From the NCBI GenBank assembly GCA_964035545.1, contig OZ037765.1, positions 20,770,995 through 20,834,994 on the forward strand: a stretch of 64,000 nt of DNA, read 5' to 3'. The number at the start of each line of letters is the position of its first letter. The stretch's first letter is position 1. Below, piece by piece: positions 11,674 through 64,000 of the stretch. This stretch comes from Bugula neritina. Its lineage: Eukaryota; Animalia; Bryozoa. The position numbers and the translations under genes are program-made. Below the pieces are notes generated by a model. It was not told where the DNA came from. It searched no databases and saw only the letters and a list, made by a program, of their open reading frames with translations.

Positions 11674-11723
11674 TATAGCCTATTAAATAGGCTATATTAT
11701 ATTTTGATTAAGTGTTTACACAC

Positions 11724-14719
<2,996 letters not shown>

Positions 14720-15224: not shown

Positions 15225-15227
<3 letters not shown>

Positions 15228-15316
<89 letters not shown>
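15228..15316. repeat. (TA)n microsatellite
   Basis: Direct reading. Confidence 0.95.
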
Positions 15317-15319
<3 letters not shown>

Positions 15320-15741
15320 TTGTTTATTAAGTTGAGGTTTTATTTGTTTTATGTAGAGAGCTTCGGCTAATTTTCTATAATGGATTTCTTTAAATGACTG
15401 ATTGAAAACTGTTACGCTGTCTATTGATATGCTACCGTTTTTAGTAGTAGAGATATGTTGATATATTTTGAGTTTATGTCATGGCAATGTTCATTTATTC
15501 TGTGTGATATATAGGCTACTCCTTCATAAGGTAGTTGAAGTAACCTATTTTTTTGCTGTCCTTTTCACTGAGTAGTTCGTTACAAATGTTGTTAATCGTC
15601 TTTCCTAATACGCATTTAAGGTAGCTATTTTTATCTTATAACCGAAGTGTACTAAATATGCATAATTTTAAACTGAAATAAAGCATTTAAAAGGCAAGCA
15701 GCTTCTATGCTTAATGTAGAGTGATGCGCATACTTTTACAG

Positions 15742-15878
15742 AATGAGACAGCTATTGATATATTTACAAGAAATAAATATGTTGATGGCACAGTAGAAGG
15801 TTTCAATGTGATTGAGAAACTGCCTGAGCTTGTCATGTCTAGTAAAACCCATTTTGAGCACTTGATGGCATTTACATA
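15742..15878 (+). pseudogene. Orphan inverted copy of metalloprotease exon 60372-60508 with flanking intron sequence
   Basis: Same 137-nt length, 15 differences by hand count, AG and GT retained; [45 protein letters not shown]. Flanks ~15650-15940 align to the reverse complement of ~60300-60600. Confidence 0.9.
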
Positions 15879-18534: not shown

Positions 18535-19172
18535 CTAGGCAAATGTTTCTCGATACCATCCTCTTGGTTGCTGGTAATTCCTAAAATTAATACATATAAA
18601 CAGTTCAGGTATTTGTTCGAAATAACAAGACTGGAATTAGAAAACTTTATACTTTATATAAAATTGCGATCCACTGTGAGCAGAATGCAGTGCAATTACT
18701 ACTATTAGTTCAAGTCATATAGAATAATGCAGAAATTGTAAACCCCTTACATTTTCCTTTTGGCATTGCCAGCTCTTTTGCCATTTAGCCAGCCATCATT
18801 TGAACTGGAAGATTCGGAGCCAAAAAAGCTGCCAGCAAACCTGTTTTGACCAACAGGAAATCCTCTTGCTGTGAATCTCAGCGCAGGAGACTGGAACAGG
18901 GCATTCTTGTCAGGGCGGACTGCATCAGATCTCTTGCAACACCGAACCTTTAGAGAGGAAGATGATAGGTTTAGTGAATATCTAGCTCCTTATATTTTAT
19001 ATTAAATTATGATCCATTATGAGTAGAAATGAAAAATTGTGCCATACTCACAACTATCAATATCAATGCAATTACTATGCAATTACTACTATTAGTATAA
19101 TTGCTGAAACCAATCCCGCGATTGTTGGTGCCAACCATTGAGCATTGTTCTCTTGTTTCGGTTCAGCTGTTT
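18535..19172 (-). CDS. Gene A TM and cytoplasmic exons (19052-19172, 18751-18947, 18535-18580)
   Basis: [32 protein letters not shown](LILIV) | [16 protein letters not shown] | [15 protein letters not shown]. The TM exon is interrupted by an 11-bp duplication; the last exon is less certain. Confidence 0.75.
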
Positions 19173-22100
19173 CTAAAATTTTACAACAGTTTGACGTTGA
19201 GTTACCATAAAATGTTTCAGTGACAGAAGAAATTTAGCCTATGTTCCAGAAAAACAAGGTTTCACCAAAACAATTATCACTGCTAACACATATACTTCGA
19301 TAAAAATTTCTAGTCTCCCTTTGAGCATTTCTAAAAGACAATAGCAAAAACCGGTAATTTTAGTAAAGCTTGTAGATTTGAATTATATAAACTGATCCAC
19401 ATTTCTTGCTGGAATTAACCAAATATGTTAAGAAAATTTAAAGGAGGCATGCATTTAACCAACTGTTCCACCCAGTCTGATTCATTACAAACATGAGGAA
19501 CAAAAGACTACTGGCACGATAAAAGGAAATCGATGTGAATAAGTATTTTACAAGAATGTAGAAGACATGCCTGCTACTAGCACTTGAGATACGGCTAAGC
19601 CTGATGCAGATTTGCCATCAACAACAATTCCAGCAGTAACAGCGGCACTCAACACATCATGAAGCATATTTGCCAGTTCTTCCTCTCCTAATTCTGGGTC
19701 TACATCTGAAGCTATTCTTAACAAAGCTGCAACATCATTGTTGGATAATATTTCTCGTCGGCTTCGTTGGCCAGAGTCCTCAGCTGGTAGGCAACTAAAG
19801 TTCAAATTATCAATAATTGAAATAGTTACATCTAAGATTTCAAACTTTAAAAACTTGTTTTTAAAAAATGAATTACAACTAAGATATGTGTTGTTTATAG
19901 ATATACACTATTTTATAAATCTTTGCTAACATTCCCAAACTGCAAATTTTGAACATAAAATGATACCACATGAAAAACTGTAAGCTATTCTAACTAGAAA
20001 TTTGTAAAGATAATGCAAGCCCAACTTGACTTTTGAAAATATGAAAATAAATTTTTTGATAAAACGTGACTGACTTTATACAAACCTGAATGTCACACCC
20101 AATACTGCAGCGTCATATTGTCTGAAAGAAGATTCGTTCAGCTCTTGGTACACCTGCAAAAGAGAAAAGGATATGAACACAAAAAACTGTGAATACAATG
20201 AGATAATACCAAAATTATCAATGCACAATGTTGGGTTCAAGCTAATAAAAACTTGTATAACTTGAGCCTTTATGTTTACAGCAGCAGCTCTCTGCTTGTG
20301 CTGAATGGATTATATATGTTTACATATACAATCACATGGCAACTGAGAAAATAATATCGTAACAGAAATTATCTGTACAATTGTTGGGTAATTATAATAC
20401 TGCCATCTTTTATTACTTGAGTTCTTGATCGATAAAATAAATATATATTATATAAATGCGTGTGCGTGCGTGTGTGTGTCTGTGTGAGCGTGTGCGTGTG
20501 CGAGCAAGCGTGTGTGCGTGTGTATTTGTAATGAAGCTTACCTTGGTAAAAAGTGCTTGTTTGATTGTGGCATAAGCTGCAGTGCCATCCATTTCAATAT
20601 CATTTTCACATTCTCTATCCGAAAATCTGTAAGTTAGAGTTGCTGTGAACTCAATCTTTCCTTGAATCAGCTCAGATATTACTGCAATCAGTTCAATATT
20701 GAAGTAAAGATGACAAAAAAGAAAAATTGTATTCAAAACATGTACATCGATTGGAAATAAAACATCATTCCTTTGTAAATGCCAGTAAAATAAAGTTCAA
20801 TCACCTTTAATGTTAAAAAGATTCCAAGTAGATAAACCATTAATAGTGATATAATCAATTAAAAGCATTTTTTGAAGAGAGGAGGAGGCACTAAATACTT
20901 TATAATCATATAAAGCGTAGCTGTTACTAACGTAAAACTTGAGATTGATGAACAATTTTTTGAATTTTTGTTATAAAAACAGGCAGCACATATCAATGAC
21001 TTGATCACATGGATATTTTTCATGAGAAACCTAATGAATCAGTATAAAAGCAAAGCATATTTTCAACTTCTTACACATTGACTAGTTTAGATACTTACGC
21101 TGACAGTCTTGCATTAAAGTCCTGGCATAGTTTTCAGCACACTCACATGTGTTGATAGCAGTACAAGCCTCCTTGGCAGGACAGCGTCTGGTAGCAGAAC
21201 AACTTTGACCAAACACTACAAGGAAGAGACTGATGATACTTATAAGAACAAAGATGCTGTACAGAGGCTAACTTCTGAGTCTTTGACATAAATTCGAATG
21301 ATTTCTCAAGTTATGGTATGAAAGCAAAGTCAGTCGGTTGAAAACCGATCCTCAATTTAGTTGAATTCACACATTTAAGTTGACCAGCAGTTCAGTTGAG
21401 GTACACATGCTGTGTGATTAAAAATTATATATGTCGTACAGAGAGAATTTTATAGAGCTTTGCTTACCTGAAGCGTATGGTGAGAGTGTAGTAGTAGCAG
21501 ACAATGTTGTTGACACTGCTGAAGTGGTAGTATCTGGTATGAGAGCCACTTGGCCTTCATCTGCCCCTGTTGAAGTCTCATTTGCTATTTGAAGTTCATT
21601 TGAAGCCATTTGGGATGTAGCATTAGCAACAAGCTCTTGCAAGCCAGCGACATCTAGCTCATCACTGCCATCAGGTGTGGAATCCATCGCAGCTTCAAAC
21701 TCGACATTCACATCTGCTGAGGAATCTATCGCTCTTTTTCTTCGGGCTTGAGAAACCCCAGGTACACATCTGAATAAGTTGACAATGAACATCATGTGTG
21801 TGTATAACAAACGTATATAGTCGTATGTATGTGTATACATGTATGTATGTGTGTGTATATGTATGCATATATGCTCAAATAAAGACACTTACATTTGAAC
21901 TATACCTGCTCAATACACATGTATATAATTTAAGCATATGCTTATGATATTGAGCACACTTATTTGTTATCATTAGTTCATTTTCTAATACTTACGTAAA
22001 GGTCAGTTCTATGATGGCTACAAAATATCCTCCTTTGCCAGTAGCTCTGAATGATTTGTAAATCTAAAATAAAAGCAGAACTTTATTACATGCTGTGAAA

Positions 22101-25100
22101 TCTCCCAATTTAATCTCACTTGTAACTTATTGGACAAGTATCTTATTTGACTCTAGAGGTCAATAAAGTAAATGTTATCGTGACATTGTATTACATGCAG
22201 AAACCTTTACACATCGCAGCCAGTATAATGTTTATCTTATTTGCTTTTGAGCGTAAAGCATTATGTTTAAGAAATTAGATTCATACTTTTAGAAGAAACA
22301 AACAAAAATTAGTTATTACTATAACAAATTGTTTAAAAAATTTAATTTACTCAACCTAAGCAGTAGAACTATAGTGTAATAAAACTAACATTAGCAATTG
22401 CACCAAGTCTTGCTTCTGCATACACATCTGATGTCTTGTTTTCAATGTCAGTATTGCATCCACTTGGGAAAGTGTAAATAACTTGAGAAGTAAATTTAAC
22501 AGTGTTGGCTACAGTTTCGCTAGATATGTCTACAATAACAAAAGACAATAAACTACAGCATTATACATGCACTTATTATTACAAAAAAACCGACAGCAAA
22601 GATGAAATAATATTATGACTCACCAATGCAATCACCAGAAAGAGCACTTCTTACATAGTCCGTGTCACACTCACATAATTTTAAGACACTGCATACTTCA
22701 TGAGCTGCACATTGGCCACATTCAGAGTTGAACCACTCATCTGAAATTAAAGAAGAAAGCTGTTTTATTTGGATGTCAGTACCCAACCAACACAAAGTAA
22801 CTATAATATTCTGTCTTGCATGTGATGTCACAAGGTGCAACTGCGTTTTGTTATCAAAAGGGTATTTTTGAAAAATTTATTGGTTGAAAAGATACAGCCA
22901 TTACAAGATTAATGTAATGAATGATTGATACTCTACATAAGTTGATCAATATATTACAGCTTTACCTTCAATTGCAGTAGTTGTCGTGGGTTTCGTAGTT
23001 GTGGGCATTGTAGTAGTTGTGGGTGTGGTAGTAGTTGTGGGTGTGGTAGTAGTTGTGGGTGTTGTAGTAGTTGTGGGTGCTGTAGTAGTTGTGGGTGTGG
23101 TAGTAGTTGTGGATGCTGTAGTAGTTGTGGGTGTTGTAGTGGTTGTGGGTGTGGTAGTAGTTGTGGGCGTTGTAGTGGTTGTGGGTGTGGTAGTAGTTGT
23201 GGGTGTTGTAGTAGTTGTGGGTGCTGTAGTAGTTGTGGGTGTGGTAGTAGTTGTGGATGCTGTAGTAGTTGTGGGTGTTGTAGTGGTTGTGGGTGTGGTA
23301 GTAGTTGTGGGCGTTGTAGTGGTTGTGGGTGTGGTAGTAGTTGTGGGTGTTGTAGTAGTTGTGGGTGCTGTAGTAGTTGTGGGTGTGGTAGTAGTTGTGG
23401 ATGCTGTAGTAGTTGTGGGTGTTGTAGTAGTTGTGGGTGTGGTAGTAGTTGTGGGTGTTGTAGTAGTTGTAGGCGTTGTAGTAGTTGTGGGTGTTGTAGT
23501 AGTTGTGGGTGTTGTAGTAGTTGTGGGTGTGGTAGTAGTTGTGGGCGTTGTAGTAGTTGTGGGTGTTGTAGTAGTTGTGGGCGTTGTAGTAGTTGTGGGC
23601 GTTGTAGTAGTTGTGGGTGTGGTAGTAGTTGTGGGTGTTGTAGTAGTTGTGGGCGTTGTAGTAGTTGTGGGTGTGGTAGTAGTTGTGGGTGTTGTAGTAG
23701 TTGTGGGTGTGGTAGTAGTTGTGGGTGCTGTAGTAGTTGTGGGTGTTGTAGTAGTTGTGGGTGTTGTAGTAGTTGTGGGCGTTGTAGTAGTTGTGGGTGT
23801 TGTAGTAGTTGTGGGTGTGGTAGTGGTTGTGGGTGTTGTAGTAGTTGTGGGTGTGGTAGTAGTTGTGGGTGTGGTAGTAGTTGTGGGTGTGGTAGTAGTT
23901 GTGGGTGTGGTAGTAGTTGTGGGTGTTGTAGTAGTTGTGGGTGCTGTAGTAGTTGTTGAGTTGGTAGTATTAGAAGTAGTTGGATTGACGTTGACAATGT
24001 TGAAGCCTGCAAAAAACAACAAAATCATATAGTAAGGTAAAAAAAGATTTTTTAAAGGTTTCAAAATTGTCAGGATAGTTCTTATTAAAAATACAGACCA
24101 GTAGCAGAGGTAATGTTGTCTACTGCATCTTCAAAGACCTCCAGTAAATGTTGATGACTGAGGTAACCAACATCTGGTACCTTCACGTAGATTCCTATTT
24201 GAAGATCATTATTCTCATCATATTTAGGAAATCCGGGAAGTCTTGAAAAGTATTCTTTGTAAAAATTAAGTGGTTGAGCTGTAGCTCGTTTCTTCCTGTG
24301 ATAAAACTGAGTAATTATAATGCAAGAAATGACAGACTGGTGTGGTATAAAAGAACTAACTTGACTTTACATAAACAGTTAAGCACAGTTAAACTTTTGC
24401 ACAGTATAAGGAAAGTTGTTCAATTATGTACTGCACCATGGAATAAATACACTAACCGCCTGCTCATCTGAGAGCTGGTTATAAGATCGCAAGAGATTTC
24501 AGAGCATTTTGAAGTTGCGGACTTCGCCAAAATGTCAAATAGAGTTGTCTCTTTTTCCACTGTGTACTGCAAAGTTTACAGCATTATATAAATAAATAAA
24601 TAAATGACTAAATAAATAAATAAATAATAAAAAAAAATATATATATAAGTATAAACATGCAAATTGTTATTTTTATTCTATTATATTTGTATAGCAGTTA
24701 AGGAGTTACCTCAGAAATATTTGTAGTAGCAAAAGAAAATTCCAGTGAGTTCAATTCAGCTTTCTCTTCTACCTCACCAGTAACTTCTGCGACTGGACTG
24801 GAAGGGTTTACAACTGCAATATAAATAATATGAGTTTAACTTGTCTTTTGTCTGGTACAAAGTTTACAGAACATATAAGAAGTGTAGGTAGCATGTGATG
24901 TAATGTGATAAAGGAAAGAAACAACTGCACACTTATACTGCAACCGAGAAACAGTTTTGTAGCACTATTAATGATCTTAACATTGTCACTTGTAAATATA
25001 TGTCATACGTATGAATGGTTGTCAAAAAAATCTACTGTTTCTAATAGCAATAATAAAGTGTCTAAAATATGCCACCTTTTAATATCACTCCAGTCTCTTA

Positions 25101-28100
25101 CCTAGACACACTCCATTGACCTCTACAAGAGTTGTAGAGCAGACACATTCATATCCACCTGGAGTGTTAGAGCAGTCATGTGAGCCATCACAGTCATATT
25201 CATCAGTGATACATTCATTGATGTCTACAAAAATATAATTTGCATACTAGGAGCAGGCAGACAAGCTTCAAATGATCTCTAAGAACTTTGGAGTTAAATA
25301 TGCTGTAGTACATCCAATGCTAACCATTGCAAGTGAATCCATTGGTATCAAGAACATAACCAGATGCACAGCTACAGTTGTATCCACCATCTGTATTTGT
25401 ACAGATCTGAGAACATGCATCTGTTCCTAGAGCACACTCATCAGTCTCATCACATGTTTTTCCATCACCATTCAGAGTGTAGCCTTTGACGCATGAGCAC
25501 ACCTCTGTTCCATTTACTTTGGAACACAAGCCATTGTCAGTATCACAGTTGTTTGAGTCAGCACAAACAGTGGCAGCTAGAAATTTAAAACAAAACAAAA
25601 AGTTCTAGTAAGGATAAAATATAGTTTATACACAGATTGGAAAGCAAGGTGTAACAATGCAATCAGGAAATAGTAGCAATTTGATTTAAACATATCCCTA
25701 CAGGCTAGTAATTCATTAAAAATAAATAAAGCAGTAAACAAAAATTTTCTCCTTTATTTATTGCTGATATTTTGATGTATTTAAAAATTGAGCAATTATA
25801 CAACTAAATATGTACCTTGTACAACTCACTAGATGCTGTGAGAATTCTGTCTGTTGTTTCATTGTAATTCCAATTTCCAAATCATAGATTTGTTGAGCAA
25901 AACAATTTTACTTACTTTCACGGAGTTTTTTGTGTAATGCACTTAATATATATACTTACGTTCACAGTTGATAAAGTCTTTACTAAGAACCATATTTTCA
26001 GGACAACTGCATGTATATGATCCATCAGTATTGTTACAGATCTTATGACAAGGGTTCATTACTTCGCATTCATTAATATCTAAAACAAACAACAACGTGA
26101 CCTGGTTATTAAATTTAGTTTGCTTACACAACAGCTAAAATGAAGCAATCAGTTTAATTACCAAAATTTAAATTAAAGTCACATTTCTAATCTGAATATA
26201 TATATAAGAATTTGAGCAAAGTGAAAATTTACTGAATAATGTCAATATGGTTTTGTAGTTTACAGTGAACTGTTATAGAAACAATAATATGCAACTTTAA
26301 ATCAATCAAGTTTAGGACAACTCTAAAAAATGAATAACAAGGCTAAAAAACATTTAGCAGAAAACATTTTACTCCTAATGTAAAATATTATACATTTCAT
26401 TATTATTTTACAGGGCAAAGCAAATATTATTATGATCTAAATTCTAGTCAGTTGACTAGTTTTTTATTCCATTGCCTGGTTTAAAAACAAAAAAGATGTA
26501 AATTTAATATATTTAATTTAGAAAAATAGAAGATTAGAAAAGTTTTTGCCCAGAATGCCTATAGTTAAAAGTACGTAGAAAAATCTAATCTTTGTAATAG
26601 ATTGTCTACAACACTATTGAGCAATATTGGATATACAGGGAATAAATTTAGGCAATTTTCCTGCAAATTAGAAACAGAAATTGCAAAACAACTATTTATA
26701 ATTGCTATATATGATAGACCATGCCAAAACCTACAATCAAAACATAGTGTAGAAAAAGTTGAAGAGATTTAACTACAAAACAACAACAGCAACTCCGCTA
26801 GGTTTATGTGGAACATTTGGAAAGCTAATAAATGTAATGCCACAATTTCAAGAGGATAAAGAAAAACATATTGGAAAATCAACAAGCATATTAAAAGAGT
26901 ATTGAGGCCATTGAACATAAAAATAATATGATTTAGTGACGACGATATATGAGACAACATTTGTAAATATACTGATTGGTTGAGTATACACTTAAGACCA
27001 GCTGTATAGCTTAGCACATATATCTCTGGCAGAAAAAAGGTTGACTAATCTGTATGCCAGAAAAACAACAGCGAATATTTTGAGTGTAACCAGACCTAAG
27101 ATTAGTGTGTAATTCTTAATATTATTGCCCAGTAGCAATATCTGTTGGCACATGCAAACTTGCTACATACTTGCAAGCCATTCCCTATGTAGATATACTT
27201 ATTGGTAACATGACACGTCATATGGCTTAAGTTTTTGCCTAACCATAACATAATGAGAATGATATTTTGTGATGTTAACAGAAGTATTAAACTTACCATC
27301 ACAAGTAGCTCCATCTTCATTAAGCTCATAACCGTTAGAACAGACACAGACATATGATCCTGGAGAGTTGATACAGATGTGATCACAACTACTTTCATCT
27401 TCACATTCATCTATATCTGTGCATGTTTTACCATCTCCTGTGTATCCAGGTGGACAATCTCCACATCTGTAAGTAGTATGAATATTTATTAGATGTTTAG
27501 AGATACATAAAGATAAAAGAGAAACCTACAGATATTATATCAACATAAACTTACGTGTATCCAGTGTGATCAGCTGGTGGTGGACTATCTACACACAGAA
27601 CTGATGGATAACAGGGAGAAGCTACCAGAGAACATGCATCTAAATCTGTATCACAAGTATCTCCTGTATATCCAGTGGGACAGATACAATCCAATACCAC
27701 TGAACTGTAAAACATATTTACATTATATTAAGTAGTTTGTAATGGTATGATTGAAAGCAACATTTTTAATGTGCCTATTTTTCTATCTTGGTTGTAAAAG
27801 TCTGATTATAACCATAATATGCTTTTCAATTCTCGAATTTTTATTTGAGATTCGCCATTTAAATGAACTATTCATAATATACAGAAACGTATTATAGAAG
27901 TACATATTATAATAGCATTCAAATCAAATGCTATAATAACTATAGGTGTATAAAATAGAAAAATTACAAGTTATACAGGACCGACAAGGGTAGACAAAAA
28001 TCATGCTTATATGAATGCTTTCATATACTTTAAAAATCACAGTTGCCTACAATAAACAAAAGAAACTACATGCGTCATTTGAAAAAAATTACTGTGCAAC

Positions 28101-52100: not shown

Positions 52101-55100
52101 ATATCTAGACCCATGTTGGCATAAGTGGATAGTGGACATGCTTCACCGTCATATTCAACTCGACACAGATACTCTGGGTCATACACCTCCCCAGCAGACT
52201 CATCTATGTAGTCATCTGTTATATCTGCATACAGAGTCATGTTGGTGCACTCTCTGCCGTCCCTGTAAAAAGTCTTGGCTCAAACAGTATATTGAAACTT
52301 ACAGCTCTGAGTTACAAGGTCAATGGACTTAGGACACAATAAACTTATTATACCCTTTCAAAGGGCTAGCATCAAATAACATTTATTTGTTCGAAAACTT
52401 AGTAAGGCTTTATGTATTGATAAACTAATGCAATTTACGATTTTTATTGTGAACTGCTTAGTTTAGTACTGATTGTGAATATAATAAACTGTGTATAAAA
52501 TATGCAGTGGCATTTTTATAGACCTAGAAGTCCTATCCTATTACAAAACTTAAGTTATTTTTAAATGACATGCCAACATATGAGAATTTTTTATTTAAGG
52601 TAAGCCAAGTCTATTATTCCATATGCACTGACTGAGTAACTATTCTAGTGACTCTATATGGAAAAGCTAAAAGTAAAATGCACTGTGAAAGCATTTTTAT
52701 TAGATACATGTAGGGTAGCTATTCAACCACATTTCAACATATCATCTTTTGTATGTAATGTGTATGCTATGTATATGTTTTGTATCTAATGTATATGATT
52801 TGATTTTATGTCTAGCGTAAGGTAAAAGCTTTACATAAATTTCACTACAGTGACTGTATATACTTACATGAGTGTGTAATAGAAATAGTTTTGGCTGCAG
52901 CATGAAAAATAGAAGTATGTCTCAGTTGGGAAGTCAACAAAAGGAACCATGATCCACCCGGCATCGGCAGAACACTCCTCATTCTCATCATGCTCAGCTC
53001 CCAGACTACAATGAGAACACACGTCAGAGCTGACTAATTATATCAATCGTGTGACCAGACAAAAGCTGTCATATCAGTATAGCAGCTTACATAAATAACT
53101 AAGACTAAATTACTACATTACATACAGAAATCAACAAACAAAACAGTTTTGTACATTATTTCTAAGTACTTAACAACCAAAAACTAATTAAACTATAGAA
53201 TCCAATTAATTCATTAATAAATATATTGACTAAGTGCATTTTATTCTGAAGTAAATTATAAAAATTAGTTGAAAAACATGTATGAGCTAATTGCAGATCG
53301 GTGATTGTATAAGAACAGTGACACATTTAATCTGGACCTACTTGTGGCCAAGTTCATGGGCTGCAACATTAATAGTCTCCTCAATGTTAAATGGGCTGGC
53401 ATGAACCAGAGATGACGCTGTTCCCTCCTCTCTCTCACATATTCGACCTAAATAGGCAACACCTAGCAAGCCCAAGAATCCTCCATCTCGCAACTCATCA
53501 CTGAAAATCATAATTTGTAAATATTAGGATATTTTTAAGTCTACAAATGCTCTACAAAGTAATTTGCAAACAAAGTGACTCACAGATTTTAGTTATCATT
53601 ACATGAAATTGCAGCATAAATTAATATATCATTCCAGAAATTTTAATTAAACATATTACCTACTAAAACAGATGCTTACATAACTCAAGTTGGACTGATT
53701 TTGATTAAAAGACTTAGAAGTGATTATAATTAGGAAGTAGTTTTATATACTGAAACAAAATAAGCAGACACAAATTTTAACTATTAGAAATATAGTAGTA
53801 ATCTTGTGGGTTCTTATGAAATAGACTAAGCAGTCTGCATGCCTTATACTATGTTGACCAATAAAAGTCGTCCTAAATTCAAACAATATGTGCCTTTATT
53901 CTTCTATAGATGCCTCTTGGTTGAGCTCCAGTGTTAGACTGACTTAGCACTGGCAACTCTCCCACTTATATACCAACAAAATTTCCCGACACTCAGGCCG
54001 TCTGAAATTCGGAGTTTCGGTTGCCGAAATCGGAAGGATTTGTCCAAAATCGGACAGGCCCTTTTGAAGTCGCGCTTCCGGGTTCCGAAATTTGGCCAAA
54101 CTTTGGCGGGGGGGGGGGACATAACTCCAAAAAATATAACAATGAAGTGAAAACGTAGTTCGCAATTCTACTACAATATTTATAATGATGAAAAATTCAT
54201 AGAAACTCATACTTAATTCTGAAATTTAGCAGTCTTTTCTTCATTCATTCATTCAGTGATAGTAACAATAAGTATAAAACATAAGTGTAACGTCTACCCC
54301 AGTTTATTGATAACAGGTTACACTGCTGGAGTTTTGTTGATATTTATTTAACTAACTGGTAACCAACGTGAAACTCTATTACCCTTCCTTGGGAGAGTTA
54401 GAATTAAGTATATAAAATTGTGATGGTGAAAGTTTAATCAAATAAAGAATGACTAGTTAGAACTGCAACAGTCAGTAGAGAAATGAAGACATAAAAAACC
54501 TTGGCTATTATAACTTCTGGCTACAAGCTATAAAAGCTGACAGCTATTCTGTTAGCAAAATCATTGCATTGCAATAATGAAAACAAAGCTATTTGTGGTT
54601 TAAGAAAAAGCTGTGGCTATGTGAGTAGCTAAGTGAGTAGCTAAGTGAGTAGCTATGTGAATATATGGGTGAATGGTATGCAGTAGTGAGTAATATAATA
54701 AAGAAAATGATCAAAACGCTACACTCCCACCTAAAATTTAGGATGAAATTTTACTTGGTGCTTTTACTAAAACTACTAATTTACTCAATGGCCTGACGAG
54801 CCTTCACTTTGGGGTATCTATGTACTGTTAGTAGCAGCCTCATGGATTTCACTCCTCATTTCAAAACGTTAGACTTGGCATTGACTAGTCAGAAACCATG
54901 AGATCAATTGTGATCTAGTGTAAGTCCTAGACATTGGTGAGCAGGTAGTGAGTGATGATGGCTAATTAGTAGCGCGGTCATATGTGCAGATTAGGGTAAG
55001 ATGATAGGGTGCTTCTTATCATGTGACAGGGTGATACATTCTTGAAGTCTCCCACCAATACGAAGTAGAGCTTTTGAGTCTAGTAATAGATTTAGCGTTG

Positions 55101-58100
55101 TCAGACAACCAGATTTTTTTTTTCGGAGTCTGAGATGCCTTGAGCATGGCGATCTTATTTAAAAAATACGCTGCATGTATGAGTTAAAGGATAGTTTGTT
55201 TGGCATTTTGAAAATTGAACGGGGCATTTTTGCTTAAGTGCTTTTGAATTGTGGCAGTTGCCCTGACTGCTCTGTTTTAGTCAGAGAACTTTTCCAAGCA
55301 TCCATCGAGTGAAAAGTGAACTGTTTGTGAGATGAATGACAATGATGACTGTTTTACCTCCACATCTTTAGGGTTTACGTACACCAATGGCTGTGTGGGT
55401 AAGATATTAGGTTCGGTCCTGGGAAATTGTTTCTACTCTCTTTGCAACACATGTGTGAAAACGATCAGCAGGATTACTTATATGGTCAAGAACAACAGTG
55501 GAGTCAGAATAGAAGTGTGTGCTGATGGTTGAAATGTCAAGTTCTTTGATATATTTTGTGACCGATCTGACAGCACTTGCTGCTGCCTGAAGTTTGAGTC
55601 ATGAAACTTGTCTCATTGGTGCGACTTGGGCTTTACCTGAAAGCAGTGCGACATGCACTCGCCTTGCCGAGTTAACTAGTCGAAGGTATGTGCAGTGATC
55701 ATAGCCCACTGTACTGGCGTCAGCAAAAGTGTGGTTAAGCAGTTTCCTATGAATCAAAGTCATGAGGAGTGAGACATCGAGGTATGGTGATATGATTGAC
55801 AGGCGTCAAGTCTGATTTCCAAGCAGACCATCTGAGTCTGTGAGTGATGCATTCTAATCAAGGTTATTAGAACACGTCTCTTGTAAAATAGTTTTGCCCT
55901 AGAGAACAAAGGGAGCTATCAGATATCGGGGTTTAAAAACTAAGGCTACTGTGGATAGGACACCTTTCCTAGTGTCTGGTTTGATAATGGGCGATGCTGG
56001 AATGTGAATTGATCTTGCGCAGTATCCCATAGGGCACGAAGTGAAAGTTCTTGAAGTAATGAATCAAAGGTGAGATCTAGGGTGTCAAGTGTGTTTGCAC
56101 ACTCACTCCTAGGTAACTGTGATATGACAGACTTACTGTTAGAGGCTATTTTGTGGAGCCACAATTGACTGGTTTGACAAATGGACTAAGTTTGTTTGGT
56201 GAGGGTGATTTGTGTTGTTTATCTGATGCATTTTGTTGAGAGCTTTGTCTTTCTGGGTTTTATCGTTAATCTGGTTTTATGGTGGGTTGCTTGTTTGAAT
56301 CATTAAATGTCGTTAGGTTTCTGGGGTATTTATGCATTTTGTGAAGAGAAGTTGGGTGCCTTTCTTTGCAGATATTGCAAACAGCAGGAGATCCACATTC
56401 CTTGGCAATGTGGTTACCATCTAAACAGGCATAGCAAAGGCGTTTGTCTCTTATGAACTCATGAACTTCTGAAAATGGCAGAAGGTTTAGCTTGCCGCAA
56501 ACAGCAGTTTTGTGATTGTCCATTTTGTAGAATATACATGCATGAATGTGTGTTTCAGATTGCTGTGGAGCGACTTCAGTTTTCTGTGTAGCAAATGTCC
56601 TTTTTGGTATTATAGGTTTTTCTATGATGATGTCTTGGGTTTTTTTCTTTGCTTGTGTGTTTGATTCATGGAGAACTTTTGACATGTTGAAAGCCTCATT
56701 GAAAGCCATCTTCAACTTCTGGTATTTCTGTGTATTGCTCAAAAACATGGGCGGTTCTAATGGACGTTGCCTAACTAGGTTGATACTTTCAGCGTAATCA
56801 TCAGGTGTGAAGGCAGGTTGCCGTTGGTGACTGGAGGTAGTAATGGGGCTTTGATAAGCAGGCTGGAGAACATTCCTTGAAATTTTGGTAGACTGTACAA
56901 AAGGATTTGTGGATGGTGGAGGTGTCATGAACTGTAAGAAAGGGTTTGTAGATGCTACAGGTGCCGATGGAATAATGTGAGGTTGTATTATGTTTTGTTC
57001 TGGAGGCTGAGGTTTGTAAACTATTGGTTGAGGTGGAGCAGCTGGTATAATAGACGGTGATTGGTTTAGAAGAGGACAGGAGCTATCTTTCTCTTCCTCT
57101 TCTTCAATGGCTTGGGCTATGACTTGCTCTTCAGCCTGCGCTGCGTCTATTTCAGCCTGGAGCTGTTGCTGTTTGATAGCGTTTGCAAGTTGACTTGCTT
57201 GCTGTTGTAACTCATAAATAAATTGTGCAGATTCTAATTTCTTTCTTAGTGCGGCTGCTTTAGCTTTAGATTTTACCTGCAATAATCTTAGCTGTGAGTG
57301 TGAGCTAGCACGAGATGAGTGACTGGATGAAGCCGATTTTGAACTAACAAAGTGACTAGCAGATCCTAAGATCTCGAAGCGCTGATTTTCTTGTGCTGGC
57401 TCGAAGCCAGCAGCTTTTGTTTTAGTTGAAAGTTTACTCATTCGATCTATGGCATCACCAATCAATGTTTCACAATCGGAATGCAATCTATCCATATGAT
57501 TTCGGACCCGAAGGTCTGGCTCATGGTCTCCTAGCATCTGGCGCCACTCATCATAGGTTCTCTCTAAGTTGTGTTTAATTTGAGATAGTTGGTTTTTATA
57601 ACTTTCCAATGAGTCATACGAAATATCCTGTTTTGATGCAAAGTGTGAAAATATAGATTTGTGTAACTCGGCACAGTTTTTGATTTCATTGTCTAGTTGT
57701 GCAGCTTTCTGATTAATTTTTGTTCTTGAAAATATATGGGGTTTTGAGGTGTTTGATTTAGACATCACTTATTTAGGTATGAGAGCGTTATTTATTATTT
57801 ACAAAGAAATTTTGTGAAATATTTGCTCACTAATTTGCTACAGGGACGGACAAAAGTGACAGGTGATGAGGGATGATTGAAGAAACCTATTATTTGATGA
57901 GCAGATTATGATGAATAATGTCAGCCAATATCAAAATATTTGATAATGTTCCAAATTATTCCACTAGCTTTGTGATTTCACTACTACAAGTACTAATGTT
58001 ACAGTATTCCAAAAAAATTAAAACTAATTCAGCTTAGTTATATTAAGTTTAACAAAATCAAGATTATAAAAGAAATGTTGATGTGATATTACTTAGTTTA

Positions 58101-61100
58101 AGTGATTATAGTAGGTAAGAAACTCAAGTGTTGTAGATTTAAACCACAATGATACATTAGAACAACTTATCGGTTGAGTTAGTTGTCTGTTGACCTCTGG
58201 CTCCGTCTGTGTAGTTCTGATGCGTGATGTTGGCTAGCTGTTAAAATGACGTACTAGTGATGATAGTTGAAACTGAGTGGGTTTGGGTTAGTTGTCTGTT
58301 AACGGCTGGCTCCGTCTGTGTAGTTCTAATGCCTGATGTTGTGTTAGCTGCCGAAATGACGTACTGGTAATTTTAGTTGAAACTGAGTGCAGACAGGAAC
58401 TGAATGTTGAACTTTACTGGCTTTATGGTTTGTTTTCTGGGTTGATTCTTTGAGTACTCCACTTCAAGGCAATGAGTTGCAGCAGGGTTTGTGTCTTCTT
58501 GGTTTTGGCAGCAACTGCACAGAACTGGTCTTTTCGGAAGTAGGAAGAGTTTCACTGTAACGTCTACCCCAGTTTATTGATTAATGGTTACACTGCTGGT
58601 GTTTTGATAATATTTATTTAACTAACTGGTAACCAACGTGAAACTCTATTACCCTTCTTGGGGAGAGTTAGAATTAAGTATATAAAATTGTGATGGTGAA
58701 AGTTTAATCAAATAAAGAATGACTAGTTAGAACTGCAACAGTCAGTAGAGAAATGAAGACATAAAAAACCTTGGCTATTATAACTTCTGGCTACAAGCTA
58801 TAAAAGCTGACAGCTATTCTGTTAGCAAAATCATTGCATTGCAATAATGAAAACAAAGCTATTTGTGGTTTAAGAAAAAGCTGTGGCTATGTGAGTAGCT
58901 AAGTGAGTAGCTAAGTGAGTAGCTATGTGAATATATGGGTGAATGGTATGCAGTAGTGAGTAATATAATAAAAAAGATGATCAAAACGCTACAAAAAAAA
59001 AAAAAGCTGTGGCTATGTGAGTAGCTAAGTGAGTAGCTATGTGAATATATGGGTGAATGGTATGCAGTAGTGAGTAATATAATAAAGAAAATGATCAAAA
59101 CGCTACACTCCCACCTAAAATTTAAGATGAAATTTTACTTGGTGCTTTTATTAAAACTACTAATTTACTCAATGGCCTGACGAGCCTTCACTTTGGGGTA
59201 TCTATGTACTGTTAGTAGCAGCCTCATGAATTTCACTCCTCATTTCAAAACGTTAGACCTGAGTTTAGTTACAAATCAAAGAGTTAGACTGCAACGCCAA
59301 CAGTGTAAGTGTAACAACAGTGACAGTCATACTCATTGTGATTGTCAATAATCAAAATGAATACTTTTGAGCAAATTAATTATTACTATTAGTATTACTA
59401 TTAGTAATAATACTTAGGTAAGTAGAGCTTTACTTTTATTTTTTTAATACTAATGCTGATATAGTTATACTTAGTAAAAACTTTATTAAAGTATAAAGAT
59501 TAAAAGTAAAACTAAAAACTAAAATAAAAAAAGGAAACTCAAACTGAAACTCAGAGTCACTAGTCGCTAATTGAGCAATTCTAATCATTATGACTAATGA
59601 CAAAAGCATAAGATTAGGTGACAGGTGGGTGACTGTGATTGTGACTCAGACAATAAAGAAGTAAATCTTACATTTTACTATCAAAATTGTCAACAAAATC
59701 TTTAGATAATTTTGAAAACAAGTTTGAATATACATCTTGATCTTGCGCGAAGCAGCAAGTAGCAAATGGGAAAAATTGAAGTCATTATGATGGCTGTGGG
59801 TTAGGAAAATAAATTAGTAACTCAGATGCGAAGGCTAAATATTGTGTCTTTGCTAAACAATTTATGCTGAATCTCATGCTACATTGGAAAATCCCACCAA
59901 GCGAATGAGAATTCCACTTTTCTATTCATAGCCTTTCAACTTGTCAACCGGTACGCGAGTGCCGTATCGCACCGGTACAGGAACTTGGTGAAATATTAAT
60001 TTACGTGGTTTGACGTATTTAAATACAACATTTTGTATAAAGTTTCATATGCAGATCATTTTAGTTGTGAAGCTGTGAATAAATAAGCTTGAATAACCCT
60101 AAGCTAATAACCTTTGGCGCTTGTTGAGTTGGTAAAATTTCCCTTGCTGCCGCAGAGCTACATAGGCCTATGCATCTCAAATTATTACAAAAATTCATTT
60201 GCTCAAAGGCACAGTATTTTCAAATAATATACTATTCATAAAAAGTCGATGCTCAAGCTATAAAAAATATTAATATAATATTTTTATTCCAGTCGATATT
60301 AATGTTGTCCGTGTGCATTTCTTTATGGTGTGTTGTGTGTGGTTTGGACCATTAGAGCTGCATATACTCACTATGTAAATGCCATCAGGTGATCAAAATG
60401 GTCTTCACTGGACTTGACAAGTTCAGGCAGTTCCTCAATCACATTGATTCCTTCGACTGTGCCATCAGTATATTGATTTCTTGTAAATATATCAATAGCT
60501 GTCTCATTCTGCAAAAGTATGTGCATCACTTTGCATTAGGCATAAAAGCTTATTGTCTCCTAAATATTTTGTTCAAGTTTAATATTAGCAGCTTTGATGA
60601 AAGAAGTTACTGAAATTACTATGTAGGCCTACTAGCAATGTGATAAGATCTGCAACACAAAGGTTTATCAAAAGAAAAATTTTGATGATGAATTTCTCTC
60701 TTTCTAGTATTGTAATGCATTATCGGAAAGCAGGTCTTATTACTTTACATGCAAAACCAAACCATTGTGTGAGCCCAAGCAAGCAAAAAGCACTATTCAA
60801 TACAACTACACAGTGAGATATCTACTTGCTTATATAGCTTTCAATCAATGAATTACGTATTAATTGTATATATACTCATAGCATTAAACAGTCCATAATT
60901 GAAAAAGAATGGAACGTAATATTTATGAGTATAGAATTTCAAAATGGCAAAACAAACACTAACCAATAGCTAGTATATAACCTCAATCATTTGTGGTTGT
61001 TGATTTGCTTGAAACTATAAAAGTTGAAGCGTTAAAAATATTCAGTGTTAATTTTCTTTACCAGTTATAAAAGTCTTTCCTTACCATTTGCTGTTCAATA

Positions 61101-62616
61101 GTAATTAGTTGGACCCTGATCTTTAGCTTTGGATGGTTAATGTTCTCATATCTATCATTTATCTATCAAAAGATGAAGTTGTAATTTATGAAAAGTTAAT
61201 ACCACATGTAATAAACGCTTTATTTGTTGCTACTGTAGTAACAACAGATAAGATAGTGGTTGTCTTTGGTTTTTAACCTGCAAAAATAAGAATCTAAATC
61301 TGCCACTTGATACTGCTCCCGGGACACATGCACAACATATTTGCTTTTTACTTTTGATCTGGCTAGATCTAAACAATTTACTTAGGTCTTCCACATTTTT
61401 GTTACGATTCCAACTTTTAACTAATCAGCCACCAACTAGTAGATTTGATATCAAGCTTGACTAAGAAGTTTGTGCAACTGATTTACTTTACAATAAAAAA
61501 ACTTTTGTAGAAACATACAATAGAATATTAAACACAAGTCATGCATGGGCAAGGTGTAAGGTTTAGTTATTTGCTGTAATAAGAACCTAAAGGTGAGGTA
61601 ATTTTTTCAGAGCTAAAAAATATCTTTGACAGTTTATAATTATCAGAGAGCTAAACTAATTACAATGATTATTTCTCAGTTACCAAGTACTGCTTATATA
61701 AAAATTAAGCTTGAACAATGAATGCAAAATTACATCGAATTTTAGCGAACTTGCAAAGTGTAACATAAACAGCTATTGATAATTTTCCAAATGGTTAAAG
61801 AAAAATATTAGATGCAAATTTTGCATGACTGAGCTCATTTCAGTTATTATGGAAAAGTTTCAGCTGACACCTATATTATATCAAAATGCTTAGCAATACA
61901 AGGAAAAGATGAGGTAAGAACAAATAACAGAGCTTAGACAGGTGTCGTATTAAATACAATTGGAAGGTTGAATTGTTCCCTTGCAATTACACCTTTATTA
62001 AGGATAACTAATATTAGAATTATATTTTGTTGTTCATTATATTGCAAACAAACATTATCATTGCATTGGAAAAGTTTCCTTATCTACATTAATGGGCTGA
62101 CTGCAACTGTGTGTAATCATTATCATATTGCACCAATTATAAATATTGGGAAATGGCATTACATGAGTAATATAACTTTACTCATTCTGTCATAATTCTA
62201 GCTATTGTAACCTCATGTAGTTCTGGAATTTGTATCTTACAGATTAAAGTCATTTTCTAAAACCCAAGGTTAATTCATTAACCTATATCTTTGGTAAAAC
62301 AAACTTTATAGTATAACTTAATTAAATCAAAATTTAAAATAAACGGATATATGAACATACAAAATAGAATATTCACACGGTTCTGATTAGTCCTGGGTAT
62401 CTGCAATTTGTATTCTTTTACTTACTAGGTTGAACACGTGAGCAAAGTAAAGGTAGATGCTTTCTAATGCTAATATTTGATCTTGTGTCTCCTCATAATA
62501 GAACTTATACACTGAGTATGCGTTGAGTATTTTTATCTCAATTGTAGCATCAACAGCATCATATTCAGTCTGCCGCTTTTTTCTCCGTGCTCCATTCACT
62601 ACTACTTTCTTTAGTG
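18535..62616 (-). CDS. Gene A (partial, 64 exons): giant metalloprotease-LDLa-NIDO-AMOP-VWD-EGF-SEA transmembrane mucin-like protein
   Basis: Continuous chain of phase-compatible exons, summing to 11,951 coding nt (~3,980 aa) once the 11-bp duplication in the TM exon is removed. Segments are listed separately below. Confidence 0.85.
19571..22740 (-). CDS. Gene A two [6-Cys EGF-like + SEA-like] modules (22624-22740, 22390-22529, 21996-22063, 21468-21769; 21099-21215, 20542-20681, 20086-20153, 19571-19794)
   Basis: Exon sizes 117/140/68 occur twice with the same phases; SEA-like [21 protein letters not shown] and [21 protein letters not shown]; ARRKR and RSRR motifs. Confidence 0.8.
22966..24006 (-). 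CDS. Gene A Pro/Thr mucin exon, ~53 x PTTTTT (18-bp units)
   Basis: ORF 22946..24064 trimmed to gcag|GC at 24006 and G|gtaaag at 22966; 144-bp higher-order period marked by the AST variants. Confidence 0.9.
24099..24813 (-). CDS. Gene A linker domain (possibly SEA-like) with a furin site (24710-24813, 24457-24566, 24099-24295)
   Basis: Open, phase-compatible exons missing from the ORF track; SQMSRR|[18 protein letters not shown].. spans the junction. Confidence 0.8.
25102..28888 (-). CDS. Gene A beta-rich domain plus 7 EGF/cbEGF repeats (28671-28888, 28340-28452, 27555-27704, 27297-27466, 25960-26079, 25325-25576, 25102-25224)
   Basis: DIDEC, DINEC and ETDEC starts with C-x-N-x-x-G-[SG]-Y-x-C-x-C; [15 protein letters not shown]. 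Confidence 0.92.
29008..30911 (-). CDS. Gene A VWD domain and following Cys-containing segment (30765-30911, 29868-30148, 29383-29551, 29008-29274)
   Basis: [23 protein letters not shown]; [20 protein letters not shown]; [10 protein letters not shown]; MUC4/SUSD2-type VWD. Confidence 0.93.
30277..30712. mobile_element. Foldback MITE: ~435-bp near-perfect palindrome with TA flanks
   Basis: TATATGGGTCA..TTAATTTAGTACACACTGGAAATCTCC is mirrored at the right end; centre TTACGGACCGTTAC-loop-GTAACGGTCCGTAA. Confidence 0.85.
31172..32387 (-). CDS. Gene A AMOP domain (32219-32387, 31945-32107, 31172-31295)
   Basis: [53 protein letters not shown]. Confidence 0.9.
32523..35306 (-). CDS. Gene A fourth, divergent NIDO domain (35107-35306, 34558-34822, 33526-33692, 32824-32917, 32523-32696)
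   Basis: [10 protein letters not shown]; ICKNGMISF; FSPFWGRSD; [11 protein letters not shown]; [23 protein letters not shown]. Confidence 0.9.
36309..39293 (-). CDS. Gene A mucin+NIDO cassette 3 (38829-39293, 38438-38559, 37603-37786, 37309-37394, 36855-36953, 36309-36432)
   Basis: [11 protein letters not shown] / [17 protein letters not shown] / [11 protein letters not shown] / [11 protein letters not shown] / [18 protein letters not shown]. Confidence 0.9.
39417..42111 (-). CDS. Gene A mucin+NIDO cassette 2 (41968-42111, 41568-41689, 40717-40900, 40426-40511, 39966-40064, 39417-39540)
   Basis: Same exon sizes 122/184/86/99/124; the mucin exon is reduced to 144 nt; all open and in phase. 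Confidence 0.9.
42125..42540. mobile_element. MITE of the same family as 30277-30712, TA target duplication
   Basis: Left end TGGGTCACTTCACTTAATTTAGTACACA, right end TGTGTACTAAATGAAGTGAAACGACTCT; the empty site is visible in the paralogous intron near 39300. Confidence 0.85.
42653..46776 (-). CDS. Gene A mucin+NIDO cassette 1 (45565-46776, 44775-44896, 43919-44102, 43627-43712, 43167-43265, 42653-42776)
   Basis: 1212-nt exon of 63-bp units ([21 protein letters not shown]) with a 495-bp higher-order duplication, followed by five NIDO exons. Confidence 0.9.
45010..45391. mobile_element. 382-bp MITE, possibly PIF/Harbinger-like
   Basis: ~38-bp TIRs GACTTGGCCTCACGCTCGTGAGAATCACACGAAA / TTTCGTGTGATTCTCATGAGTGTGTGGCCAAGCC; TTAC on both sides; absent from the paralogous introns at ~38660 and ~41798. 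Confidence 0.85.
47091..51201 (-). CDS. Gene A seven LDL-receptor class A repeats (50959-51201, 50043-50173, 48831-48972, 47934-48170, 47091-47194; the first repeat starts in 51513-51660)
   Basis: [93 protein letters not shown]. Confidence 0.93.
51513..52262 (-). CDS. Gene A ADAMTS-type Cys-rich (disintegrin-like) domain (52033-52262, 51513-51660)
   Basis: [48 protein letters not shown] matches the PG..Y..QC..C..LwC..dGT.CG.g.wC..g.C pattern. Confidence 0.85.
51934..52004 (+). pseudogene. tRNA-like pseudogene or SINE head (TCC anticodon loop)
   Basis: A box TAGCGTAATGG, loop CTTCCAA, B-box-like GGTTTGAATCCC; acceptor stem mismatched. Confidence 0.5.
52868..62616 (-). CDS. Gene A reprolysin (M12B) zinc metalloprotease domain (62426-62616, 61085-61162, 60372-60508, 53342-53500, 52868-53005)
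   Basis: ARRKKR furin site; HFDHLMAFT; [10 protein letters not shown]; VAAHELGHN|LGAEHD (HExxHxxGxxHD split by an intron); Met-turn WIMVP; FSCCS. Confidence 0.92.
54286..54873 (-). repeat. 3' LTR (588 bp)
   Basis: TGTAACGT...ACGTTAGA on the plus strand; direct repeat of 58556-59257. Confidence 0.9.
54874..56210 (-). pseudogene. pol: Decayed pol remnant: end of RT, RNase H region, integrase zinc-finger start
   Basis: LHKIASN, RALWD..DQFTF and [18 protein letters not shown] motifs, with stops and frameshifts. Confidence 0.75.
56266..57768 (-). CDS. gag: BEL/Pao Gag-like protein, 500 aa
   Basis: Coiled-coil N-terminal half; [41 protein letters not shown]. Confidence 0.85.
   Translation of the reverse strand: MMSKSNTSKPHIFSRTKINQKAAQLDNEIKNCAELHKSIFSHFASKQDISYDSLESYKNQLSQIKHNLERTYDEWRQMLGDHEPDLRVRNHMDRLHSDCETLIGDAIDRMSKLSTKTKAAGFEPAQENQRFEILGSASHFVSSKSASSSHSSRASSHSQLRLLQVKSKAKAAALRKKLESAQFIYELQQQASQLANAIKQQQLQAEIDAAQAEEQVIAQAIEEEEEKDSSCPLLNQSPSIIPAAPPQPIVYKPQPPEQNIIQPHIIPSAPVASTNPFLQFMTPPPSTNPFVQSTKISRNVLQPAYQSPITTSSHQRQPAFTPDDYAESINLVRQRPLEPPMFLSNTQKYQKLKMAFNEAFNMSKVLHESNTQAKKKTQDIIIEKPIIPKRTFATQKTEVAPQQSETHIHACIFYKMDNHKTAVCGKLNLLPFSEVHEFIRDKRLCYACLDGNHIAKECGSPAVCNICKERHPTSLHKMHKYPRNLTTFNDSNKQPTIKPD
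58172..58389. repeat. Two ~110-bp tandem copies in the retroelement leader
   Basis: GTTAGTTGTCTGTT..CTGGCTCCGTCTGTGTAGTTCT..AAATGACGTACT..TAGTTGAAACTGAGTG occurs twice. Confidence 0.85.
58556..59257 (-). repeat. 5' LTR (702 bp) with an internal ~114-bp duplication
   Basis: Block GCTGTGGCTATGTGAG...CAAAACGCTAC is present twice, joined by an A-run. Confidence 0.9.
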
Positions 62617-64000
62617 CTGAAATATAGAAATATTATTAATTTATCGCCATCTTTCTGATAAATGTTTACTAATGAAACTTTTTTACAGACTAACCATAAA
62701 GCAAATACAAATGTTAGAAAACCAAGTTCTTAGATATTTCAATGAAATACAACCAATGTCTCATGTAACAAGCGTTTCCCCAGTACTCTTATTTTTGTAC
62801 CATAAAGGTTTTTCAATATATCTTTAATTTACTTGCAAACTCTATCGAGCAAATTTTTTACTTTTGTGGGCAATAAAATATGTAATAGCTGTTTAACATC
62901 GATCACTTGTTTTAAAGAATAATATACTAACTGTATAGTTTTTGAAGTAACATGAACTATTTTTAAGGTCCTGGATTTCTTTTAACAAAATTTACAATAG
63001 TCTTATTTATATGATTGTTCATTACAACATATAGTAATTTGCTAAAACCGGTTTTATTCTTCTTTTGTCAGGAGTTCAAGTTACGCATTTTTATAAAGAA
63101 TATGTTAGCATGTATTTTGATTCAACAAATACATTAAAACAAAATAAAATGAAAATTAAATAAAATACTTAACTGTTACTGGAATGGCTATATAAACCGA
63201 AGTATGAATAAATATGCAAATAAACTAGTGTAATTAATGATAAATGTGTTTTTGTAGCTGTAGTAGTTATCTTTCAACCTCACATATTTTTAGTAATCAA
63301 AAAGGTGTTGTTTACTATAATTACTATTTGTAATGTTCCAATGTGACTAAAGTATAACATTCAAATTGATATTTTACCAGTAAATATGCCTATAGCTTCA
63401 GATAATTAAAATTATCAACACATGTGTTGCTTTAATAACTTTTAAAAAATTATTGGGCCTTTTTATATTCATTTTCATGCAGTTCCAGCACATTTATTGC
63501 ATATAATTTAATATACCAGTGCTTTCTATTGTTTTTACATAAAATAAGTATTAGAAAAAAAATGCCTAAATCTATTTAAATATGTATTTAAGTTTTTATT
63601 CATTATAAAATTGTATAAGAAAACCTCTTTATTAGGTCAAAGGAATAAACTGTGTTGTATATAGTCTGTGAATCACTTTTTATAAAAAAACATGGTCAGT
63701 TACATTCTGCTAAAGAAATGACTATGTGCAGGTATACACTAATATGAACAAGACGAATGCACCGGTAAATTTTTAGCATAAATATGTACTCATGTTACAT
63801 GTTAAGCAACAAATGTTATCGAGCAAATGAGTAAAAAGTAGCTGAGAAGGAAAACTGTTATAAATAAGAGAAGAACCAATTTGTTTATCTATGTACAATG
63901 TCTTTTAAAAAATCATTGGAGGTAATAATTGCTTAATTAACTAGATGACTTCTCTTACCATTTCCATGCTGAATAGAACCACACCTATGTTGATTAGAAT

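Follow-up and report, generated by a model that had tools for sequence, protein, structure and literature searches.

Does a stretch of the Bugula neritina genome encode one giant protein, in which a zinc metalloprotease sits at the head of a membrane mucin, or two neighbouring genes whose exons happen to fit together? The stretch (called the window here: the whole 64,000 nucleotides that were analysed, numbered from the first base) lies on the largest chromosome of GCA_964035545.1. This is tzBugNeri2.1, the Darwin Tree of Life assembly of a 216-Mb genome (PMC11480708). An initial annotation, made from the letters of the window, had proposed that 64 exons splice in phase from a furin site, through an ADAMTS-like protease and seven LDLa repeats, into a MUC4-type membrane mucin. 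The gene in question is called gene A here. At the DNA level, the best reading is that the protease-LDLa part and the mucin body form one transcription unit, and this seems rather likely from the comparisons described below.

Gene A lies on chromosome 1 at about 20,789,529-20,838,913, on the minus strand, and covers about 50 kb. The curated model has 70 exons, all with GT-AG boundaries, and 12,867 coding bases, which is 4,288 codons with 0 internal stops. It opens with a Met, and its stop codon ends at 18535 on the minus strand. The proposed chain held up in being GT-AG bounded, in phase and free of stops, and the furin exon is present. However, the curated count from that exon onward (18535-62616) is 65 exons and not 64, and the gene starts further 5', with five more exons past the end of the window, up to 67919.

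The starting material for the model was the stop-to-stop frames of the minus strand, which hold a long run of short coding pieces. The gene-finder used codon log-odds trained on domain-bearing open reading frames (ORFs), generic splice matrices and phase bookkeeping, and was free to split the region. Allowed several genes, it preferred one gene for gene A. It missed a catalytic exon at 61085-61162, which was added by homology (tblastx with a paralogue, gene C; AG and GT are present). The gene-finder exons at 63959-63984, 65524-65560, 43511-43564, 40310-40363 and 35677-35695, and its acceptor at 53029, were dropped as unconserved or as breaking domain profiles. Pfam, PDB and ESM Atlas searches were made with single exons or exon ORFs, and the joined model served to count its length, check its phases and stops, and place the motifs. 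Some model of gene A is probably already part of the Ensembl annotation of GCA_964035545.1.

The junction and the paralogue cluster

The protease-LDLa part and the mucin body meet at a 314-bp GT-AG intron of phase 1 (46777-47090), and its coordinates, boundaries and phase are exactly those that had been claimed. The joined exons read ...ECN|R|STSDG, a polypyrimidine tract precedes the CAG, and both donor and acceptor are conserved in paralogue B. The initial annotation also held that the mucin part has no new signal peptide, which is borne out: a signal peptide is present solely at the 5' end of gene A, and the junction gap (314 nucleotides in A, about 320 in B and about 413 in C) has no ATG or signal exon. 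A contig of sequencing run X1 covers 46746-47279 unbroken, so the junction is not an assembly join.

Gene A belongs to a tandem cluster of MUC4-like genes at 20.69-21.01 Mb of chromosome 1, only three of which have the protease cassette. The exon with the zinc-site motif HELGH and the exon of the ADAMTS_CR_2 module (the CR exon) have three copies each in the 216-Mb genome, in A and in its paralogues B and C. In 3/3 copies the protease-CR-LDLa block leads to NIDO exons on the same strand, and the genome holds no stand-alone protease copy. The partner of the LDLa exons at the junction differs between the copies. In A it is a long mucin exon, in B a stub of that exon, and in C the first NIDO exon directly, again in phase 1 (chromosome 1, 20,709,611|20,710,025). 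The junction sequence is clean in all three.

Paralogue B lies about 40 kb upstream of A on the same strand. It has an intact zinc motif, all 17 of its 5' exons intact and a full transmembrane (TM) segment, and is without NIDO4-AMOP-VWD-EGF and the third juxtamembrane module. Between A and B, synonymous divergence (dS) is 0.12-0.31 and the ratio of nonsynonymous to synonymous divergence (dN/dS) is 0.27-0.45 in every module. Paralogue C (chromosome 1, about 20,687,000-20,723,300; loci L015-L018) is about 110 kb from A on the plus strand, and so inverted relative to A. It has the full body and about 30 LDLa repeats, and it appears to be a pseudo-protease, because all three zinc-binding histidines are replaced (RELGR...LGAKYD). 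The gene-finder kept C whole and ended it before D, a plain MUC4-like neighbour. Between A and C, synonymous sites are saturated in most modules, module order and phase are kept, and dN/dS is 0.12-0.28 in the protease and MUC4-like parts alike. A and C are old duplicates, and purifying selection acts on the two halves. Gene conversion seems to have affected the CR exons and some of the EGF exons of A and C.

Contigs from B. neritina-associated metagenomes represent a sibling taxon (exon dS of about 0.16-0.23, introns about 90% identical). One of these, L027, is the orthologue of A's protease region, with all splice sites kept and a dN/dS of 0.15 over the two zinc-site catalytic exons. Another, L040 (14.5 kb), is the orthologue of C; it covers six LDLa-region exons, the junction and, beyond it, NIDO, the AMOP-like exons, VWD (with GDPH) and C8-3. 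Its junction AG and GT are intact, and the comparison with C gives a dN/dS of 0.20 (1136 codons) and an intron identity of 0.90. Homologues at 40-45% identity, found on short contigs of other samples, keep HELGHxLGxxHD and GWIM. L010, L012, L024 and L026 have reprolysin and/or CR and then LDLa, and L025 (1.1 kb) has the CR exon alone; these five contigs span 1-5 kb, too short to reach any mucin part. Because homologues this distant share the reprolysin-CR-LDLa order, the protease-LDLa cassette is older than the Bugula cluster.

Paralogue E, just downstream of A on the minus strand, lies partly in the window (1-16200) and continues for about 25 kb before its start. It retains the signal and pro-region exons (about 14686-14719, 14463-14497, about 13.6-14.1 kb, and 12356-12476). 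The protease-CR-LDLa block is gone from it, in a loss that extends from the intron ahead of the furin exon as far as the mucin exon. From its 5' exons it continues in phase into mucin, NIDO and AMOP-like exons, VWD and beyond, and it has long acidic Ser/Thr repeat exons of its own (about 3203-4855 and 6005-6529). The joining of these 5' exons to a mucin body backs the single-gene reading, and is suggestive only, because the third exon of E is damaged (a 40-nucleotide net deletion and a stop).

From protease head to membrane anchor

The head of gene A consists of these features within the window, in the order of the gene:

62426..62616, minus strand: end of the pro-region, furin site RRKKR (62573-62587) and start of the catalytic domain; conserved in B (91%) and C
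61085..61162, minus strand: catalytic exon 2, 26 codons, phase 0-0; from tblastx with gene C, conserved in B
60372..60508, minus strand: catalytic exon 3; from the gene model, tblastx and paralogue comparison
53342..53500, minus strand: catalytic exon ending in HELGH (53344-53358); Reprolysin_3 and Reprolysin_2/5 matches
52868..53005, minus strand: exon with N-LGAEHD (third zinc His) and the Met-turn GWIM; acceptor conserved in contigs of other species
51513..52262, minus strand: two exons with a probable disintegrin-like module of ADAMTS type (ADAMTS_CR_2), then LDLa 1 as far as its middle; Pfam
47091..51201, minus strand: five exons completing the seven LDLa repeats; Ldl_recept_a
46777..47090, minus strand: GT-AG phase-1 intron of 314 nucleotides between the last LDLa exon and the first mucin exon; GTAAGC...TTGCAG

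The five exons beyond the window encode the signal peptide and the pro-region. The signal peptide is a plausible one, MSPLKLMIILS-VLILSDCQQQNT, and is split over two tiny exons; paralogues B and E retain both, splice sites included. The pro-region, about 245 amino acids up to RRKKR, comes from the other three exons.

The catalytic domain, about 220 amino acids long, bears HELGHNLGAEHD and a Met-turn, as had been proposed. The HExxHxxGxxHD motif is completed when HELGH is joined to NLGAEHD (52987-53004) across a phase-2 intron, and the Met-turn GWIM (52948-52959) lies 3' of the third His and is kept in homologues from other samples. In Pfam, the 61-amino-acid ORF of the HELGH exon matches Reprolysin_3 at 23.8 bits (cut-off 22.4) and Reprolysin_2 at 1.1e-5, and also matches Reprolysin_5. 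A profile of seven homologues was compared with the PDB, and its matches were snake-venom M12B enzymes alone; the similarity to solved M12B structures is weak (best E 0.017).

The label "ADAMTS-like" holds in part. It applies to the probable disintegrin-like module alone, where ADAMTS_CR_2 is matched by 10/10 homologues (best 1.3e-5). The CR exon of gene A itself scores 20.2 bits, below the cut-off of 27.3, because the profile has 69 positions and the exon covers only about 49 of them; in the PDB it has no match. However, the protease is not ADAMTS proper: no exon ORF of gene A matches TSP_1 or a spacer, and the LDLa exons come next after CR. Nor did Disintegrin or ADAM_CR have a Pfam match among these ORFs. 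Because the ADAMTS_CR_2 module is followed by LDLa and not by TSP1, the protease is best placed in the adamalysin family, with a probable ADAMTS-type disintegrin-like module, and is neither ADAMTS nor ADAM by their defining features. The seven LDLa repeats that had been counted are all found by Pfam: Ldl_recept_a matches seven stretches in five exon ORFs, with E down to 4e-13.

The intron between catalytic exons 3 and 4 contains a degenerate BEL/Pao long terminal repeat (LTR) retrotransposon (54286..59261, minus strand), with LTR-like direct repeats of about 600-700 bp (58556-59261 and 54286-54877) and a Peptidase_A17 fragment (3.4e-8). In the sibling-taxon contig L027, gypsy-like integrase-type ORFs lie ahead of the same zinc exon.

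The mucin body and the anchor follow:

45565..46776, minus strand: Ser/Thr-rich tandem-repeat exon, 63 bp x 17.6; Tandem Repeats Finder (TRF) and exon table
32523..44896, minus strand: four NIDO units; NIDO matches of 29.8 and 27.2 bits on single exons (cut-off 25)
31172..32387, minus strand: three exons at the AMOP position, between NIDO and VWD, with 8 Cys; conserved in C, D and E
28671..30911, minus strand: VWD with GDPH (30889-30900), C8-3_MUC4 and the next exon; Pfam
25102..28452, minus strand: EGF-like and calcium-binding EGF exons; cEGF, EGF_CA and FXa_inhibition
19552..24813, minus strand: juxtamembrane region; Pfam EB, TRF and motif positions
19087..19172, minus strand: TM exon; three-way alignment with B and E
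18535..18947, minus strand: cytoplasmic-tail exons and stop codon; gene model

The proposed NIDO-AMOP-VWD-EGF-SEA backbone was recovered except for AMOP and SEA, which have no match exon by exon. NIDO is present four times, and units 1-3 are recent duplicates of about 3.2 kb each, separated by two shorter Ser/Thr-rich linker exons of which only the second is a tandem repeat. TRF reports arrays of 63 bp x 17.6 (45685-46775), 63 bp x 5.7 (38949-39297) and 18 bp x 54.7 (22972-23956). VWD scores 23.1 bits (cut-off 22.9) and C8-3_MUC4 scores 51.5 bits (6e-14), both in Pfam on single exons. The three exons at 31172..32387, taken singly, gave no AMOP match (Pfam at E up to 5, PDB, ESM Atlas), and their position and 8 Cys suggest an AMOP-like region. 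With the same searches, no single exon ORF matched SEA. To our knowledge, SEA is not a feature of MUC4. The juxtamembrane region has three modules of about 110-130 amino acids, each with a furin-like site (24286-24294, 21733-21744 and 19755-19766) and none with the G|SVVV motif. Also in the region are two EB-like Cys modules (EB 3.2e-5) and, at 22966-24006, an exon of TPTTTT repeats (18 bp x 54.7).

The VWD/C8-3 exon occurs in at least 10 copies, at 20.69-21.01 Mb of chromosome 1, C5:6.61 Mb and C6:10.70 Mb, some with in-frame stops. A short interspersed element (...NLV(H/R)TG.LQFL(A/T)(I/M)FH(N/F)LA(A/G)NEHGFL...) recurs in introns: in the window at 30469-30735, in L027 at 6938-7132, and in paralogue B. 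The element in B (81172-81279 in extended coordinates) abuts the truncated mucin exon. An intron of B (about 91,000-100,600 in extended coordinates; loci L006-L007) carries a GC-rich multi-kb insert with long open frames in several phases, in AT-rich surroundings.

One working gene, two genes or a disabled copy

Several points count against reading gene A as one working gene. There is no RNA evidence for the fusion, and because of this the single-gene case rests on comparative anatomy. The sole sequencing run that matches the stretch has no recorded type and is read as DNA, because it contains 0.63 of the words sampled from a stretch that is mostly intron; its contigs here are all genomic. A non-GT-AG "skip" within the intron in that run's contigs, with unknown letters between, was read as an allelic difference and not as splicing. 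Nor was a spliced or long relative of the CR exon found among 1.84 billion cluster representatives, where the matches were short genomic exon ORFs and one unrelated 718-amino-acid protein. The mucin-repeat exon retrieved no spliced ORFs from protein libraries, and the last LDLa exon, searched for related loci, retrieved just generic LDLa matches from unrelated metagenomes. The first NIDO exon had one match, an orthologue of paralogue E, which is uninformative on the junction. Read-through of the donor at 47090 hits a stop after 7 codons, and because of this a short secreted protease-LDLa isoform is possible. The pro-region exons show no cysteine switch and no Pfam propeptide match, and the sole Cys of that stretch adjoins the signal peptide. 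Finally, among the protease-bearing copies A, B and C, none combines an active protease, a full MUC4 body and an intact anchor. The fused protein of more than 4,000 amino acids that had been proposed is backed by the 4,288-codon chain, three paralogues, the sibling junction and dN/dS below 1 in both halves, but not by a transcript.

The rival arrangement is two transcription units: a secreted protease-CR-LDLa gene ending just past 47091, and a separate MUC4-like gene whose promoter and signal exon have escaped recognition. On this view, two neighbouring genes built from phase-1 modules would be in phase at the junction by coincidence. Compatibility at the junction is indeed partly expected, because the LDLa and mucin/NIDO cassettes are all phase 1-1. 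The early stop on reading through the intron and the protease-free MUC4-like paralogues nearby, such as D, also fit this arrangement, and the missing RNA evidence speaks in neither direction. However, the gap in which a second promoter and signal exon would have to fit is very short in A, B and C alike and has no ATG or signal exon. The adjacency has outlasted an inversion, synonymous saturation and a change of downstream partner exons, and the junction and its splice sites are kept in L040. There is also no stand-alone protease in the genome, and E uses the 5' signal and pro-region exons for a mucin body. Two separate genes are therefore improbable. The idea that the assembly joined unrelated loci fares far worse and is effectively refuted: nothing was found in its support, the X1 contig crosses the junction without a break, and the same order recurs in B, C and the independent metagenome contig L040. 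One transcription unit remains the best reading, and gene A is probably a single mosaic gene assembled by exon shuffling at phase-1 introns.

The membrane anchor raises a different doubt, namely that the fusion is real and that A was disabled recently, in a tandem cluster with fast turnover whose working members would be others such as B. The chain had been said to run to a TM helix. A TM stretch does occur, but its exon carries an in-frame TAG that arises from an 11-bp tandem duplication (19067-19088). In the three-way alignment this duplication is found neither in B nor in E. The strong donor shared with B and E leads to ...AIILIVVIA-stop, with the TAG (19075-19077) within the TM helix. The frame of A reaches the tail exons only via a weak GTAATT donor at 19086/19087. 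In A, no conserved in-phase splicing connects the TM exon with the juxtamembrane exon just before it, and the micro-exon used in the model (19266-19330) is unconserved, with AA instead of AG as its acceptor in E. Because of the duplication with its TAG and the missing clean conserved path, gene A may give a tail-less protein, undergo nonsense-mediated decay or be decaying, or it may be rescued by alternative splicing. A disabled A would also fit a cluster in which B, C and E have repeatedly lost parts. On the other hand, the other exons, about 66, all have open frames and undamaged splice sites, the protease exons are constrained relative to the sibling taxon (dN/dS 0.15), and the lesion could be heterozygous, be rescued by an upstream donor, or yield a tail-less anchored protein. 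A disabled A seems unlikely, if slightly less so than two separate genes. Judging by these sequences, the family appears to be in flux, with B active-looking on a short stalk, C with a dead protease, E without a protease, and A with a TM lesion.

Known systems and what gene A may do

Gene A resembles two known groups. With MUC4, SUSD2 and Drosophila Mesh it shares NIDO, VWD with GDPH, C8-3_MUC4, EGF-like repeats, Ser/Thr tandem repeats and a predicted single-pass anchor with a short tail. Compared to these proteins, it adds an N-terminal M12B cassette and seven LDLa repeats, it has four NIDO units instead of one and extra juxtamembrane modules with furin-like sites, and its AMOP is a candidate from position and Cys content. 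With the M12B adamalysins (ADAMs, ADAMTSs and snake-venom metalloproteinases) it shares HExxHxxGxxHD, the Met-turn, a furin-type site, Reprolysin matches and, probably, the ADAMTS-type module. Unlike them, it has no TSP1, spacer, classical disintegrin/ADAM_CR or cysteine switch, and LDLa and a MUC4-like body follow.

Mosaic extracellular proteins are common in marine invertebrates, and the concept of gene A has counterparts among other proteases. ADAMTS-7 and ADAMTS-12 also carry a mucin domain. The type II transmembrane serine proteases (enteropeptidase, matriptase and corin) are mosaic cell-surface proteases with LDLa, and enteropeptidase adds a mucin-like stalk and SEA. However, theirs is a serine protease at the C-terminus of a type II protein, without NIDO, AMOP or VWD. 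Coral mucin4-like skeletal matrix proteins add TSP1 domains, which shows that further extracellular modules can be built onto the NIDO-AMOP-VWD-EGF core in marine invertebrates (PMC4890752). In those proteins the added module is TSP1, and not a protease or LDLa. Full-text literature searches found nothing relevant on M12B combined with LDLa and a NIDO-AMOP-VWD mucin, in line with the initial annotation, which knew of no description of such an architecture. The search of the 1.84 billion cluster representatives brought up no long annotated relative. The domain combination appears to be new, and it is made of known kinds of parts.

By analogy with adamalysins, furin cleavage at RRKKR would remove the pro-region and free the catalytic domain. 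By analogy with MUC4, autocleavage at GDPH in VWD (30889-30900) would give a distal subunit, with the protease, LDLa, mucin, NIDO and AMOP parts, and a membrane subunit. Furin activation and the GDPH split together would place a zinc protease, retained but able to be shed, at the far tip of a glycosylated stalk on the surface of an epithelium. Calcium-dependent binding is the likely role of the LDLa repeats. A function in remodelling mucus, cuticle or matrix, or in defence, as had been suggested, is speculation. A bolder and unlikely proposal is that bugulids have a working "enzyme-tipped glycocalyx", in which the alpha-subunit of a MUC4-like mucin carries a zinc protease activated by furin and can be shed. 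The members of the cluster, with an active protease in A and B, a dead one and about 30 LDLa in C, and none in E and D, would then form a natural series that tunes surface proteolysis, ligand capture or antifouling. Were this so, cassette shuffling would have independently produced a type I metalloprotease that parallels the membrane serine proteases with LDLa and SEA.

If gene A is transcribed as one unit, it has a domain combination that was not found described, and it would be a clear, datable case of exon-cassette shuffling at phase-1 introns. Within one tandem cluster, the gain, loss and inactivation of an enzyme module would be visible side by side. The gene would also offer a testable proposal for how an animal surface may bear a protease at the tip of a mucin stalk.

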